From NCBI RefSeq assembly GCF_001194135.2, contig NC_068984.1:74807229-74855583 (forward strand): 48,355 bases of DNA, written 5' to 3'. The notes beneath the pieces were generated by a model. It saw only the letters and a program-made list of their open reading frames with translations. It did no database searches and was not told the origin of the DNA. How positions within the stretch are numbered: the first letter of the stretch is position 1; every line of letters begins with the position of its first letter. Source of the DNA: Octopus bimaculoides (Eukaryota). The translations under genes and the position numbers were made by a program. This document shows, piece by piece, positions 20,394-45,931 of the stretch.

Positions 20394-20429
20394 AGCGTGG
20401 TCATGATGGTTATGGTAGTTCATCTGAAG
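20394..20429 (+). CDS. Repeat micro-exon 1 (36 nt, phase 1-1): (E)RGHDGYGSSSE
   Basis: Acceptor tccttttttgcag, donor GAAG|gtaatg. Open frame; paralogous flanks shared with the other exons. Confidence 0.8.
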
Positions 20430-20884
20430 GTAATGGTTCTTAAATCCCCACTTTTTCCCTGCTCTACTGGCATCTAATAAGCCTTTGAATTTGACTGGGT
20501 AACTTATTTTCAAAATATAAACGTTCATGCACCATAGACACGTCATTGAATTTTTCAACCTAGGAACTGCTTCAAACCATAGATTTTAAAATAATAAAAA
20601 CAGCCTTACGCCTCTATAAATATTTAATTGTTAATTAACCTCTTTTGGACATACATCACCCACTTTTCACGCAAGTTTTTTTCGATATTATATAATATAT
20701 ATTTATATTTTACTGTTGAATTTATACACATCCAAACTGCCCAACCGTTAACAAATACAATACCATTTATGTTTTTAACATGAGTTACCCAGTGAAATTC
20801 AAATGCTTATGCGTGAAACTAGATTATATCAAATGATATCTTACATGTCCCATCTCAATTTTATTCTAGTCGTGATCACAACAA

Positions 20885-21220
20885 CACAAATGTCTCACAT
20901 TACATCGTTTGCTCATTGTCGCAGGTCTCTAGGAAAATCTCTAACTATTACTCATCCTTTAGGGATAGGAATACAAATAATAGTACCAGTCTTTGTACGT
21001 TAATCTGGAAACTTAAGGACTACAATAAACAATTCTCTTTGGAATGGTCAATACTGGCTACCTCAATACCCTACGACAAGGGTAAAGATTTTTGTCCTCT
21101 CTGTAACTTGGAGCTATTTCACATTCTGTTCTCCAAGAATAATTTAGTGAACCAGATAACACAGAGTGCATACAGATGCCAGCATTGGAGGAAACACACT
21201 TTCAGCTCATTTCATTAATT
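20885..21220 (+). mobile_element. Penelope-like element, GIY-YIG C-terminal fragment
   Basis: SSFRDRNTNNSTSLCTLIWKLKD...WSILA...PYDKGKDFCPLCNLE...RCQH, typical of the PLE endonuclease C-terminus; followed by AT-rich UTR and (TAA)n. Confidence 0.8.
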
Positions 21221-22284
21221 TCATAGTTTTTACTAATTTTAGTTATTATTTTTTTCACCTACCAACATACTCACTAGTTGATAGCCACTTTACATGCGGT
21301 ATGAACTATCACCCCACTTTGTATTTATTTTTATTTAACTTTAGACAATAACAATAATAGTAATAATAATAAATTTATTTTTACGTTTATAATAATAATA
21401 ATAATAATAATAATAATAATAATAATAATAATAATAATAATAATAATAATAATAATAACAACAACAACAATAATGAGAATAATAACATCATAATATTATC
21501 TTAAATAACACTTATATCTAGCTCCAACGCCAGTTGTTTACACTCTCTCTCTTCCTCTAGTTTAGTACAGCAGGTTTAACCCCCGAAAAGTTATATTCGT
21601 AGAATTTTTAAGTATATTTATATATATATTTACGTATTTACTATCGATTTTGTTATAGTAAGCATGTTTATTCTTATTATTTCAACACTTTATAGTTTTG
21701 TACCTTGTATTGCTATTTATTTGGGTTAATTACCGTAACTAAATATGATACAGCATTAACGGTTAATTATATTTACAATCCATCGTTAATTATCCTTCCT
21801 TATAAACGTTTTATTTACATTAATCGTATATTAAGAATTCGATGGATTCTCTCCCTTCTCCTTCCAATTACAATGAATTTTTATTACCATTTTTATTAAC
21901 TTTAAGATTTTTCTGCGGTTCATTATGTCTTCCTTTAATTTAAACTCTTAGTATAGCGTTCATAACCTCTCTCCATAAACAGTTCCCTGTAAACTAGCGT
22001 TCTTGTTACTAGCGTTCTTGTCAACTAAGCTATATAGTGGTAGTCCTCGTACGTAACCTTAGCATTCAGCGCAAGTCTTGCGTTTGTAATATGGTTCCCT
22101 GATGATGGAATTATATGTATACCAGCATCTCTTACTTCTTTGGAGTAGAGTGCATATAATTTTTGAAACATATGTAGGAATTAAAGGAACTTATTGATTA
22201 TATGCGTTTTGCTCCATTTATTATTATTCTCTAATGAGTCTACAGTCATGATATAGATATATATATTTTTCATTTTTTTTCCAG

Positions 22285-22341
22285 AGCGTAGTCATGAAAA
22301 TGGGCGCTCTCCTCATAATGATTTTGGTAGTTCATCTGAAG
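22285..22341 (+). CDS. Repeat micro-exon 2 (57 nt, phase 1-1): (E)RSHENGRSPHNDFGSSSE
   Basis: Acceptor catttttttttccag, donor GAAG|gtaagg; open frame. Confidence 0.85.
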
Positions 22342-44337: not shown

Positions 44338-44384
44338 TTATTATTATTATTATTATTATTATTATTATTATTATTATTATTATT

Positions 44385-44760
44385 GAGGTCACTACCTGGA
44401 AGCCAACTCGGAATCTTGGGGTTAATAGCCTGCGCTCTTAACCACTACGCTATATGCACCTGGGCAATTATGGAGTGAATTCTAGGGCTTAGGAGGTTGT
44501 TGTGTCCTAGCATATGTGCTGCTTCTTATAATTTTCGCATTTTCCAGTGGTCTTCTCTGTCTATTATTTTAACTTTATCCCACAGGGGGATCAGCTATAC
44601 CCGATTTATCAATATCTCCTCGTGTCACATCTTTGCGATTTTCCTCTACCCTTATTTTGAGGAGGCGACATGCTTCGCCTTTGTATAACCTACCACAGCT
44701 GCATGGGATGGAGTATACGTAGTTTTTGGTCATATTCTCTTCTATTGGTGGCTTTACTCG
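44385..44760 (-). mobile_element. Penelope-like element, inverted arm (GIY-YIG fragment, 3' UTR, tRNA-like segment)
   Basis: RVKPPIEENMTKNYVYSIPCSCGRLYKGEACRLLKIRVEENRK; reverse-complement homolog of ~45130-45597. Confidence 0.88.
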
Positions 44761-45770
44761 AAGGAGATTCAGGATATCCGTATACCGCAAGCCGACCTTC
44801 ACTGGACGATACCTCAACTACAATTCCCACCATCCATACAGTGTAAGGAGAGGGATTGCTCAGTGCCTAAAACATCAAGCAAAGAATATTAGTAGCGTTC
44901 GTGATACCCACAAAGAAGAAATGATGAAGCTCAGTAACAATCTATTAAGCAACAATTACCCCAAAAACATACTATCCACTCTAATTATGAAGAAAAGAGG
45001 GGATGAAACCAATAAACTATCCACAGTCAGTCTACCCTATGTGAAAGGCCTCTTCAAAAAGATACAAAATATATGCGACCCATATGACATCAGGACAGTA
45101 TTCAAGAGTAATACTTCGCAAATATGTCCGAGTAAAACCACCAGTAGAAGAGAATGTGACCAAAGACTGCGTGTAGACCATCCCATGCAGCTGTGGTAGG
45201 TTATACAAAGGCGAAACATGTCGCCCTCTCAAAATAAGGGTAGAGGAATATCGCAAAGCAGTGACACGAAGAGATACTGATAAATCGGGTTTAGCTGATC
45301 ATGTACGGAAAAATGGAGACCACCTTCCTCTGTGGGATGAAGTTAAATAGACAGAAAACACCAGTGGAAAATACGAAAACTAAAAGAAGTAGCACATATG
45401 CTAGGACACAACAACCTCCTAAGCAGACCGAGTGCAGATACGAATAGCATACGGGAACCGGTATTAAGGAAGGATAGGAAAATATTAGATTTATATGCCC
45501 TAAAATTCCATAATTGCCCACGGGCATATGGCGTATTGGTTGAGAGCCCGGGCTACTAACCCCAAGATTCCGAGTTCGATACCAAGCAGTGACCTGAATG
45601 ATAATAATGATAATAATAATAACAACAAACAACAACAACATCGAAAAATACCTTAGGAATGAAATTTCCCGAAGACACCTGATGAAGGCTGAAGGGTATA
45701 TCAGCCGAAACGTTGTGTTAACAACAAACGAGATGAGGACAAATATCCGTCAAATGTAAATAATGTGTGT
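44761..45770 (+). mobile_element. Penelope-like element, 5'-truncated (RT thumb, linker, GIY-YIG, tRNA-like segment, (TAA/CAA)n, hammerhead tail)
   Basis: ISVYRKPTFTGRYLNYNSHHP...LPYVKGL..KI, then IPCSCGRLYKGETCRPLKIRVEEYRK...SGLADHV; frameshifts present. Confidence 0.9.
45674..45719 (+). ncRNA. Minimal type-I hammerhead ribozyme
   Basis: gacac-CTGATGA-a-GGCTGA(agggtata)TCAGCC-GAAA-CGTT-gtgtt: intact core, 6-bp helix II, palindromic ACGT helix III, helix I gacac/gtgtt. Confidence 0.7.
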
Positions 45771-45880
45771 GTGTATATATATATACACGCGCGCGCGCAC
45801 GCACACACACACACATATATCTGATAAAGAACGGAGTTTTGTTCAACATACAGCTAAATATGTTTTTAAATTTTTCTCAG

Positions 45881-45931
45881 AATCCTCTGAAAATCCTCAT
45901 CAGAATATGCACGAATATAGATTATCTGAAG
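45881..45931 (+). CDS. Repeat micro-exon 8 (51 nt, phase 1-1): (E)SSENPHQNMHEYRLSE
   Basis: Acceptor tttttctcag, donor GAAG|gtaatc. Flanks (gttcaacatacagc upstream, gttaaatctcgatatatt downstream) are shared with exon 7. Confidence 0.85.

Follow-up and report, generated by a model that had tools for sequence, protein, structure and literature searches.

Do the eight short, mutually similar segments on this stretch of Octopus bimaculoides DNA (hereafter the window, 48,355 nt in all) belong to a gene, and if so, in which frame would it be read and what would it encode? We find that the array is the internal part of a real expressed gene on the plus strand, the exons of which are spliced serially at the predicted junctions. 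It is likely that this micro-exon gene specifies a modular, acidic, disordered repeat protein. With exons of 36 to 60 nt, no homologues, and a gap-rich draft around it, this RNA-verified gene is invisible to annotation by open reading frames or homology.

A tandem array of micro-exons

Eight paralogous units occupy the plus strand between 20394 and 45931. Each is composed of a microsatellite, a conserved 17-mer, a polypyrimidine tract with its AG, an exon of 36 to 60 nt, a G|GT border, and a SINE-like remnant. The exons are as follows, with predicted phase-1 peptides:

20394..20429, plus strand: micro-exon 1, 36 nt; ttttttgcag|AG...GAAG|gtaatg; phase-1 (E)RGHDGYGSSSE
22285..22341, plus strand: micro-exon 2, 57 nt; ttttttccag|AG...GAAG|gtaagg; phase-1 (E)RSHENGRSPHNDFGSSSE
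26877..26933, plus strand: micro-exon 3, 57 nt; exon identical to exon 2, surrounding 323 nt 92.6% identical
27827..27883, plus strand: dead exon 4 (pseudo-exon), 57 nt; cag|AAC...GAG|gcaatt; TAA in phase 1, GC donor, phase 0 open
35532..35576, plus strand: micro-exon 5, 45 nt; phase-1 (E)SHETGYNNHDDSSD
37045..37089, plus strand: micro-exon 6, 45 nt; phase-1 (E)SHETGYNSYDDLSD
39159..39218, plus strand: micro-exon 7, a cassette exon, 60 nt; phase-1 (E)SSENIYKDMHDYGDDDSAE
45881..45931, plus strand: micro-exon 8, 51 nt; phase-1 (E)SSENPHQNMHEYRLSE

The exons begin with A(G/A) and end with G throughout; a pyrimidine-rich tract and AG lie 5' of each, and each ends at G|GT, with a GC donor in exon 4. 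The introns measure 0.9 to 8.8 kb. The preliminary description had proposed eight paralogous segments of 36, 57, 57, 57, 45, 45, 60, and 51 nt with acceptors and G|gt ends, and this was confirmed by sequence inspection and by an eight-unit profile, whose strong hits in the window number exactly eight (E values of 1e-34 to 3e-63), with no other convincing one. The same account held that seven of the eight segments are open; they are, and the dead copy can now be pinned to 27827-27883 by its phase-1 TAA and GC donor. At least four independent indels separate the units, yet all eight exon lengths stay multiples of 3, and the intron flanks of the units contain indels of 1 to 2 nt.

A generic exon scan (polypyrimidine tract, AG|A[AG], length divisible by 3, G|GTRR, and no phase-1 stop) retrieved only the seven live exons and one unrelated site on the plus strand of the window, and zero candidates on its minus strand. 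That site (13193-13264) was rejected as an extra exon because neither of the RNA runs in which the gene is expressed, X20 and X14, contains it.

Splicing and expression in RNA

The RNA support comes from short assembled contigs of these two public O. bimaculoides runs, in which the strand is known only through the GT..AG ends. Exon 1 is covered (20392-20429) by a 47-nt X20 contig at depth 101, with one difference, G>A at 20399 (Gly->Ser in phase 1), and the sequence that precedes it there, ...TCATCTGA(AG), is the end of another repeat exon. A 168-nt X20 contig (depth 39) runs from exon 2/3 directly into exon 5 and then into exon 6. Before 35530, the sequence of this contig is that of the end of exon 2/3, and its joint 35575->37044 (cut +1) removes a GT..AG intron of 1468 nt at depth 39.4. 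Exons 2 and 3 are indistinguishable in RNA; an 87-nt X14 contig in which one 57-nt exon is joined to a second supports the use of both. The contig from exon 2/3 to exon 5 is unbranched, and on this basis alone we conclude that dead exon 4 is skipped in the dominant transcript.

Toward the 3' end, an 87-nt X20 contig (depth 26) covers exon 7 (39158-39218). The last 27 nt of exon 7 are joined to exon 8 at depth 13.7, and the last 25 nt of exon 6 are joined straight to exon 8 in a 55-nt contig at depth 13.8. The coexistence of the two joints marks exon 7 as a cassette; in one sample, about half of the contig depth includes it. The junctions that had been predicted from the sequence thus find their counterparts in RNA: 35576->37045 as a GT..AG joint, 39218->45881 within a contig, 22341->26877 as the expected 57-to-57-nt junction, and the skipping of the dead exon as a 26933/22341->35532 join. 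The further proposal that any subset of exons could be spliced together holds for one cassette, exon 7, and beyond it no further case was seen.

Exon 8 (45880-45931) opens a 196-nt X20 contig (depth 17) that continues for 144 nt beginning ATCACACCACAGAACATCAATCTATGCCCA. The gene therefore extends past exon 8 into sequence absent from the window: the 30 nt next to exon 8 in the RNA contig were found nowhere in the window, and no other piece of the contig was found within 45860-48355. Read in phase, the added sequence gives DHTTEHQSMP, and the next exon begins ATCACACCACAG. At the other end, two scans of 1-20393 for a first exon (ATG, hydrophobic stretch, and phase-1 donor) returned only antisense transposon fragments; a start codon, signal peptide, or stop codon was not found within the window.

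Expression of the gene is restricted, with its exons present in 2 of the approximately 19 RNA runs listed for the species (X20 and X14). Three deep raw RNA runs, including X24 and X27, gave zero reads on the exons in the ~6% that was sampled, and in the RNA that the same study provides for two other species, no contig matched exons 5 and 6 at ≥85% identity.

Reading frame and predicted product

Quite probably the translated frame is phase 1 and the product is a strongly acidic, intrinsically disordered, modular repeat protein. We infer this frame from sequence; translation of the product is putative and its secretion speculative. Phase 1 is open in the seven live exons and gives a 117-aa segment with a pI of 4.39 and a GRAVY score of -2.02, in which Ser makes up 21%, Asp plus Glu 28%, and His 9% of residues; it includes 15 S-x-E sites and a single Lys, and Val, Pro, and Ala are nearly absent. 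Examples of predicted peptides are SPHNDFGSSSEER and SHENGR in phase 1 and MGALLIMILVVHLK and SVVMK in phase 0. By shuffling, the chance that the same frame would be open in five non-identical exon types is P ~0.002-0.006. The only exon with a phase-1 stop is exon 4, the one that the RNA skips. All live units keep the S-x-E motif and the S-S-E/D end motif, and S-x-E at exon starts is kept through different Ser codon families (AGT-CAT-GAA, TCA-CAC-GAA, and TCT-TCC-GAA versus TCC-TCT-GAA). Third-position GC in phase 1 is 0.16 in an AT-rich genome, and DHTTEHQSMP, encoded past exon 8, retains the same composition. The substitution pattern was rejected as a guide to the frame: paralogous exons differ about equally often at each codon position (21/21/20), which is uninformative and shows classical purifying selection in no frame.

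In such a protein, each phase-1 junction would rebuild a Glu codon (G|AR), and exons could be dropped or added without a frameshift; each module would start with E-(R)-S-x-E and end with S-S-(E/D). We speculate that the repeated S-x-E sites, together with SSSEE, could be substrates of acidophilic Ser kinases of the Fam20C or CK2 type and, with His, Asp, and Glu, could bind mineral or divalent cations, with the protein secreted or part of a matrix and its valency determined by the number of exons. We regard this as possible but more doubtful than the frame itself.

Alternative explanations

The same gene and splicing could instead be read in phase 0, yielding short hydrophobic repeats rich in Met, Ile, and Val, SVVMKMGALLIMILVVHLK and NHTKLVIIIMMTHLM among others, with a GRAVY score of +1.28. 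Phase 0 is free of stops in all eight exons, exon 4 included, the exon 1 variant at 20399 would be synonymous in it, and some schistosome micro-exon proteins are hydrophobic as well as disordered (PMC10399815). Its openness weighs little, however, since a frame one base off a hydrophilic one, in which codons with T at position 2 are nearly absent, is near stop-free by construction. Translation in phase 0 would also make codon position 2 the most variable between exons 7 and 8, place third-position GC at 0.55 against 0.35 in introns, and leave one conserved Lys at exon starts to set against an S-x-E that phase 1 keeps by way of different Ser codon families. Exon 4 would be intact, yet the RNA skips it. 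Altogether, we consider phase-0 translation unlikely. A spliced noncoding RNA or a decaying coding gene, in which exonised duplicates keep their splice signals and open frames are left over from recent duplication, would account for paralogue substitutions without codon-position bias and for some pairs of exons that have diverged as much as their flanks or more (exons 2 and 4 are 68% identical with flanks at ~81%, and exons 3 and 5 are 67% identical with flanks at ~78%). It would also suit the modest contig depth, the presence of the exons in two runs only, and the fact that one unit is already dead. Exon lengths that all remain multiples of 3 through several independent indels, next to intron flanks that change by 1 to 2 nt, argue against it, as do the frame shared by five diverged exon types at the above-mentioned P and the motifs kept in all live units; moreover, the unit with the stop is also the one that lacks a GT donor and is skipped. 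We judge the absence of coding function to be quite unlikely.

The array might also be an artefact in which haplotypes or collapsed repeats were wrongly placed in tandem in a gap-rich draft. Sixteen runs of N interrupt the window, several of them directly upstream of units and adjoining microsatellites; exon 3 is an exact copy of exon 2, a partial unit at 23315-23722 lacks an exon, and there are more 36-nt units in RNA than in the assembly. All of the gaps lie in introns and none touches an exon, the nearest edges being 76 nt 5' of exon 1, 107 nt 5' of exon 3, 68 nt 5' of exon 6, and 109 nt 3' of exon 8. The flanks of the units differ by 7 to 30%, far beyond alleles, and genomic runs contain the units, intron-exon borders included. 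RNA contigs carry different units in assembly order (2/3-5-6, 6-8, 7-8, 57-57, and 36-36). Since contigs span exons 2/3->5->6, 6->8, and 7->8, the order and strand of the units are consistent across the gaps at 33646, 35047, 36784, 40348, and 42254, and frame continuity depends on exon lengths and splice sites and is independent of the gaps. Any error would mean that the real array is longer than assembled, not shorter, and an artefactual origin is very improbable.

An orphan gene with a known kind of architecture

A word-indexed search of 5.8 billion proteins found no homologue, and an exhaustive phmmer search of 1.84 billion cluster representatives found no match; searches of Pfam with both open frames and of the PDB sequences were likewise negative. 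These results fit a lineage-restricted protein and sit well with the preliminary description, which had not recognised the family and had suggested that it was lineage specific. On these searches the gene is an orphan; its architecture is of a known kind, shared with tropoelastin, the schistosome micro-exon genes (MEGs), and the SCPP genes.

In Schistosoma, the coding body of MEGs consists of very short exons (6 to 81 bp, multiples of 3) separated by introns of up to ~5 kb; these genes are missed by automatic annotation, exon skipping generates protein variants, and the products are disordered and lineage restricted (PMC10526429). The octopus gene resembles them in its seven live exons of 36 to 60 nt, all multiples of 3, with introns of 0.9 to 8.8 kb, and in micro-exon skipping, with 6->8 and 7->8 junctions at similar depth for one exon only. 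It differs in having no sequence similarity to them in Pfam, the 5.8 billion proteins, or the 1.84 billion representatives, in belonging to a free-living animal rather than a parasitic flatworm, in having exons that are recent mutual paralogues in a tandem repeat, and in being acidic and rich in Ser and His where the MEG logo is apolar and Lys-rich (PMC10526429). All MEGs share a signal peptide; the 5' end of the octopus gene lies outside the window.

In tropoelastin, all exon borders are phase 1:1, exons are removable in frame as cassettes, and alternative splicing is extensive (PMC12554196). Similarly, in the favoured frame the octopus borders are phase 1:1, with Glu encoded across each as G|AR, the skipping of exon 7 preserves the frame, and small exons in large introns would encode a low-complexity protein, that of tropoelastin being extracellular. 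There is no homology between the two, and the octopus protein would be without alternating hydrophobic and Lys cross-linking domains and would not be rich in Gly, Val, and Pro.

SCPPs, the secretory calcium-binding phosphoproteins of vertebrates (caseins, statherin/histatins, and SIBLINGs), are disordered acidic proteins encoded by small symmetric exons that were multiplied by tandem duplication, with S-x-E kinase sites encoded exon by exon (PMC3632108). The predicted octopus protein shares with them an acidic, disordered character and S-x-E motifs (15 sites per 117 aa, a pI of 4.39, and a GRAVY score of -2.02), on which phosphorylation is putative. The favoured frame here is phase 1 and there is no sequence similarity, whereas SCPPs belong by descent to a vertebrate SPARCL1-derived cluster. 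Their coding exons are all in phase 0, as Kawasaki and Weiss reportedly described in 2003. The SSSEE cluster and the D/E-S-H-E start are reminiscent of casein phosphoserine clusters and statherin/histatin N termini, a likeness that serves as a lead.

Like Dscam-type clusters, the array has tandem paralogous exons with conserved intron elements beside each copy. Unlike in Dscam, several members share one mRNA (2/3+5+6, two 57-nt exons, or two 36-nt exons in single contigs). A crude duplex-energy test for docking/selector pairing found upstream and downstream intron elements to be no more complementary than shuffles (z -2.2 to +1.4), and we rejected a looping, Dscam-like RNA pairing model.

The MEG design has so far been described mainly in parasitic flatworms. 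We speculate that this is a cephalopod-lineage orphan gene in which that design arose independently, with a combinatorially spliced array that expands and contracts and that would supply a population of His-rich, cation-binding proteins, secreted, phosphorylated at many sites, and variable in valency, to a biomineral, a metal-hardened structure, or a gland secretion; taken as a whole, this scenario is rather unlikely. Should the product prove to be secreted and phosphorylated, it would represent invertebrate convergence on caseins, statherin, or otolith-matrix proteins and be a candidate for metal or mineral handling. Tandem duplication of single exons with symmetric phases would build a disordered protein module by module, and splice variants that stay in frame would come for free.

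Growth of the array

Tandem segmental duplication, each time of an exon together with intron sequence, enlarged the array in units of roughly 0.3 to 0.8 kb, and each unit carries a single small exon together with acceptor, donor, and probable branch-point signals of its own. The following elements lie in the duplicated introns:

20344..20393, plus strand: upstream intron element of unit 1; 17-mer AATGAGTCTACAGTCAT, AT-rich spacer, and polypyrimidine tract ending in AG
26934..26997, plus strand: conserved element in the intron 3' of exon 3 (unit 3), gtaatgattcttaaatctcgactttttccctgctctactggcatctaat; all exons are followed by homologous sequence
35473..36228, plus strand: the whole of duplicated unit 5, with its microsatellite, its exon, and ~650 nt of intron; paralogue at 36986-37730, 84% identity by self-BLAST
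35636..35800, plus strand: SINE-like remnant, starting ~60 nt past exon 5; part of the duplicated unit, aligning with a free copy at 46575-46765

The upstream element recurs at 22233, 26823, 27778, 35491, and 37004, with a diverged form 5' of exons 7 and 8. At up to 3 mismatches, its 17-mer occurs 6 times against 0.19 expected by chance, and its position 35 to 50 nt before the AG suggests a probable role in branch-point and acceptor function. For the downstream 34-mer, 3 occurrences were counted where 0 were expected, and downstream elements keep ~80% identity even when the exons of the units compared share only 67%. Counterparts of the SINE-like remnant lie 3' of exons 2, 3, 4, 6, and 7; its assignment as a SINE is putative, made by analogy with cephalopod repeats and not from a database match. 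The exon-less stretch at 23315-23722 is a partial unit.

Micro-exon arrays beside microsatellites are where draft assemblies lose gene content. Here, two 36-nt exons occur in tandem in RNA (X14) against one in the assembly, and further units are probably hidden in the gaps. A third DNA version of the 36-nt unit is present in genomic run X11, a hint that copy number varies between individuals.

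Repeat units and growth of the array

A preliminary description of this DNA had proposed a hidden gene built from eight paralogous segments with conserved flanks. We found these units on the + strand by reading the sites and then aligning them (n = 8). The flank motifs are over-represented in the window, with 6 matches to the upstream 17-mer at ≤3 mismatches (0.19 expected) and 3 matches to the downstream 34-mer (0 expected), and a profile made from the units has exactly eight strong matches in 48 kb. A generic scan for symmetric phase-1 exons returned only the seven live exons and one unrelated site on the + strand of the window, and zero sites on the − strand. 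Exon 4, the dead exon, had been placed one base too early; its corrected position is listed below. Phase 1 denotes the frame that gives an acidic, Ser/His-rich product, and phase 0 an alternative frame with a hydrophobic product.

Exons of the array
20394-20429, + strand, exon 1
22285-22341, + strand, exon 2
26877-26933, + strand, exon 3, identical to exon 2
27827-27883, + strand, exon 4, with a GC donor and an in-frame TAA in phase 1
35532-35576, + strand, exon 5
37045-37089, + strand, exon 6
39159-39218, + strand, exon 7
45881-45931, + strand, exon 8

Parts of a unit, in order (in part 6 the slash marks the exon end)
1, (TG)n or (GAGT)n microsatellite
2, ...gagcc(a/g)taAATGAGTCTACAGTCAT
3, AT-rich spacer
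4, polypyrimidine tract with AG at its end
5, exon of 36-60 nt
6, G/gtaat and ~60 nt of conserved intron
7, SINE-like remnant

Self-comparison of the window showed that the duplicated stretches reach far past the exons (84% identity between 35473-36228 and 36986-37730; 92.6% between 22233-22551 and 26823-27145), and the array thus grew by tandem segmental duplication of exon together with intron. A free copy of the SINE-like element lies at 46575-46765, and its remnants lie ~60 nt downstream of exons 2-7 (e.g., 35636-35800). Most units carry the remnant at a matching relative position; the element was therefore in place before duplication of the unit, and may have provided homology for unequal crossing-over. 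In some pairs, the exons have diverged further than the introns beside them (exons 2 and 4, 68% identical with flanks at ~81%; exons 3 and 5, 67% with flanks at ~78%) but not in others, and we make no claim of accelerated exon evolution.

Transcription and splicing

At this locus, tandemly duplicated small exons are spliced serially, a decayed copy is skipped, and one exon serves as a cassette. The testable core of the preliminary description, namely a gene with its junctions, dead-exon skipping, and in-frame alternative splicing, is thereby supported. The RNA evidence consists of assembled contigs, which show presence and not quantity. Array exons were detected in two public RNA runs of the source organism, X20 (2022) and X14 (2015); they were absent from about 17 other listed RNA runs, and zero reads fell on the exons in the ~6% sampled of three deep 2026 RNA runs. 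This distribution implies that expression is restricted to some tissue or stage.

A 168-nt X20 contig (depth 39) opens with 15 nt, TGGTAGTTCATCTGA, that form the end of a 1/2/3-type exon and continues through exon 2/3, exon 5, and exon 6. The letters following 22341 are the start of exon 5, so that exon 4 is bypassed with no branch, as had been predicted. The predicted junction 35576->37045 is likewise used, as a GT..AG joint (35575->37044 in X20, skipping 1468 nt). The last 27 nt of exon 7 precede exon 8 in one X20 contig (depth 13.7), in agreement with the predicted junction 39218->45881, and the last 25 nt of exon 6 precede exon 8 in another (depth 13.8). Since exon 8 is joined to both, exon 7 is a genuine cassette exon; the in-frame alternative splicing envisaged for the array was thus seen for this one exon. 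The 168-nt contig stops 4 nt beyond exon 6, at the very point where exons 7 and 8 cease to share their opening letters (AATC/T versus AATC/C), and we infer that it ends at a de Bruijn graph branch between them. In an 87-nt X14 contig, a 57-nt exon is joined directly to a second 57-nt exon, the type of joint predicted as 22341->26877, in support of exons 2 and 3 both being used.

The RNA continues for 144 nt past exon 8 in sequence that is not in the window, and another exon, ending ...TCATCTGAAG, precedes the 36-nt exon; only the central part of the gene thus lies in the window. Scans of the window upstream of the array found no 5′ exon. Internal G/GT sites at 22326/22327 (exons 2/3) and 39197/39198 (exon 7) would, if used, shorten these exons in frame to 42 and 39 nt, respectively; no RNA contig using them was seen.

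Coding potential and reading frame

Exon lengths are multiples of 3 in all eight cases despite at least four separate indels (21, 3+9, 15, and 9 nt), and the intron flanks carry indels of 1-2 nt. The five non-identical live exon types share one open frame (by shuffling, P ~0.002 for a given frame and 0.006 for any frame). Two of the three frames have no stops across all live exons, so an ORF scan at the array could choose the wrong one. The phase-1 product, ERGHDGYGSSSE-ERSHENGRSPHNDFGSSSE(x2)-ESHETGYNNHDDSSD-ESHETGYNSYDDLSD-ESSENIYKDMHDYGDDDSAE-ESSENPHQNMHEYRLSE, is acidic and hydrophilic (pI 4.39, GRAVY −2.02; Ser 21%, Glu 16%, Asp 12%, His 9%) with 15 S-x-E sites; the phase-0 product is a hydrophobic repeat (GRAVY +1.28). 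A phase-0 stop requires a phase-1 codon ending in TA or TG (Ile, Leu, Val, Met), and such codons are nearly absent from the hydrophilic frame, which lacks codons with T at position 2, so that the second frame is open largely as a by-product of composition. The argument works in both directions, and openness alone therefore does not decide the frame. Paralogues differ evenly across the three codon positions (21/21/20), and hence neither frame bears the classical signature of purifying selection.

If the gene is coding, the sequence features make phase 1 the translated frame with good probability. Each unit opens with E-(R)-S-x-E, and the serine codon is AGT in units 1-4 and TCA/TCT/TCC in units 5-8, a switch of codon family that is hard to explain without amino-acid selection; at the same motif, two synonymous changes separate exon 7 from exon 8 (TCT-TCC versus TCC-TCT). 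Third-position GC is 0.16 in phase 1 (T 0.61) versus 0.55 in phase 0, and the low value fits an AT-rich genome. Phase 1 is also favored because the sole exon with a phase-1 stop has lost its GT donor and is skipped, and because the next exon, outside the window, keeps the same style (DHTTEHQSMP).

Assembly gaps and hidden units

All 16 runs of N in the window are intronic, and none touches an exon. They often adjoin the microsatellite ahead of a unit, and these microsatellites are probably the cause of the assembly breaks.

Microsatellites, (TG)n/(GAGT)n, ahead of units
20319-20343
26771-26822
35400-35490
36744-36783
36978-37003

The gaps at 20219, 26171, 35047, and 36784 abut these repeats and may conceal further exons. 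RNA contigs span exons 2/3->5->6, 6->8, and 7->8, so order and orientation agree with the transcript across the gaps at 33646, 35047, 36784, 40348, and 42254. The frame is set by exon lengths and splice sites alone and is therefore unaffected by uncertain gap lengths.

Gaps do seem to conceal sequence, and the true array is probably longer than assembled. A 66-nt X14 contig carries two exon-1-type 36-nt units in tandem, of which the assembly holds one, and the expressed unit reads A instead of the assembled G at 20399. In a further run, X11, a DNA contig of 216 nt (depth 14.6) shows six differences from unit 1 over 20369-20409. Three of these fall within the exon, namely 20399 G>A, 20409 G>T, and 20395 G>A, the last being a synonymous change in phase 1. 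This third version of the 36-nt unit represents either a hidden paralogue or copy-number/sequence polymorphism between individuals. A further stretch, 23315-23722, has no exon ahead of it, although it shares 92% identity with the intron directly after exon 1 (20476-20883); it represents a truncated unit or else a mis-join close to the 10-N gap (22563-22572).

Predicted product and relation to known systems

All exons end in G and begin with AG or AA, so in phase 1 any junction restores a Glu codon, and omission or duplication of any exon leaves the frame intact. The product would be a modular disordered polyanion, and we guess, by analogy, that it is secreted. Its repeated S-x-E and SSSEE clusters would be consensus sites for Golgi casein kinase (Fam20C) and CK2-type kinases (S-x-E motif, PMC3632108, PMC12650399). 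These clusters would act jointly with the His, Asp, and Glu residues in binding Ca2+ or transition metals, and the number of binding modules would follow the number of exons included.

The locus operates like three known kinds of gene yet belongs to none of them. Tropoelastin genes have phase 1:1 at every border, allowing cassette-like splicing (PMC12554196). Schistosome micro-exon genes have exons of 6-81 bp, mostly multiples of 3, separated by long introns, produce variants by splicing, and have been overlooked by annotation (PMC10526429). SCPP/SIBLING proteins are acidic and disordered and are put together one exon at a time, with S-x-E modules and duplication of exons in tandem (PMC3632108). 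Elastin and the schistosome genes differ from the locus product in composition, and the SCPPs differ in phase from the favored phase 1. A Dscam-type mutually exclusive cluster would include one array member per mRNA and complementary intron elements, whereas here several members share one mRNA and the intron elements of the array showed no complementarity; the locus is therefore not of that type.

The predicted product has no sequence similarity to anything in protein libraries, Pfam, or PDB sequences, and we found nothing relevant in the octopus literature on microexons or on such composition. The locus is an orphan micro-exon gene, apparently unannotated, of a known architectural kind. To our knowledge, such a gene has not previously been described in this lineage; we regard the find as solid and not as categorically new.

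Other elements in the window

Transposable elements and ORF fragments
29346-30905, Tc1/mariner-type DNA transposon, within the 7.6-kb intron between exons 4 and 5
29346-29550 and 30707-30905, its inverted repeats (~200 nt)
29605-30648, − strand, its uninterrupted transposase ORF, 347 aa (Pfam DDE_3 3e-14, HTH_Tnp_Tc3_2 2e-12)
15243-15887, 14963-15256, and 16486-16770, − strand, degraded ORFs
47592-48068, − strand, 158-aa ORF

The degraded ORFs belong to duplicated fragments upstream of the array (14646-16999; 82-92% mutually identical) that look like retroelement remains and gave no significant Pfam match. The 158-aa ORF, also without a significant Pfam match, resembles by eye the C-terminal part of a mariner-type transposase. 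High-depth RNA contigs of X20 and X14 lie over 47624-47959, show ~2 mismatches in every 40 nt, and are probably transcripts of other copies of this element.
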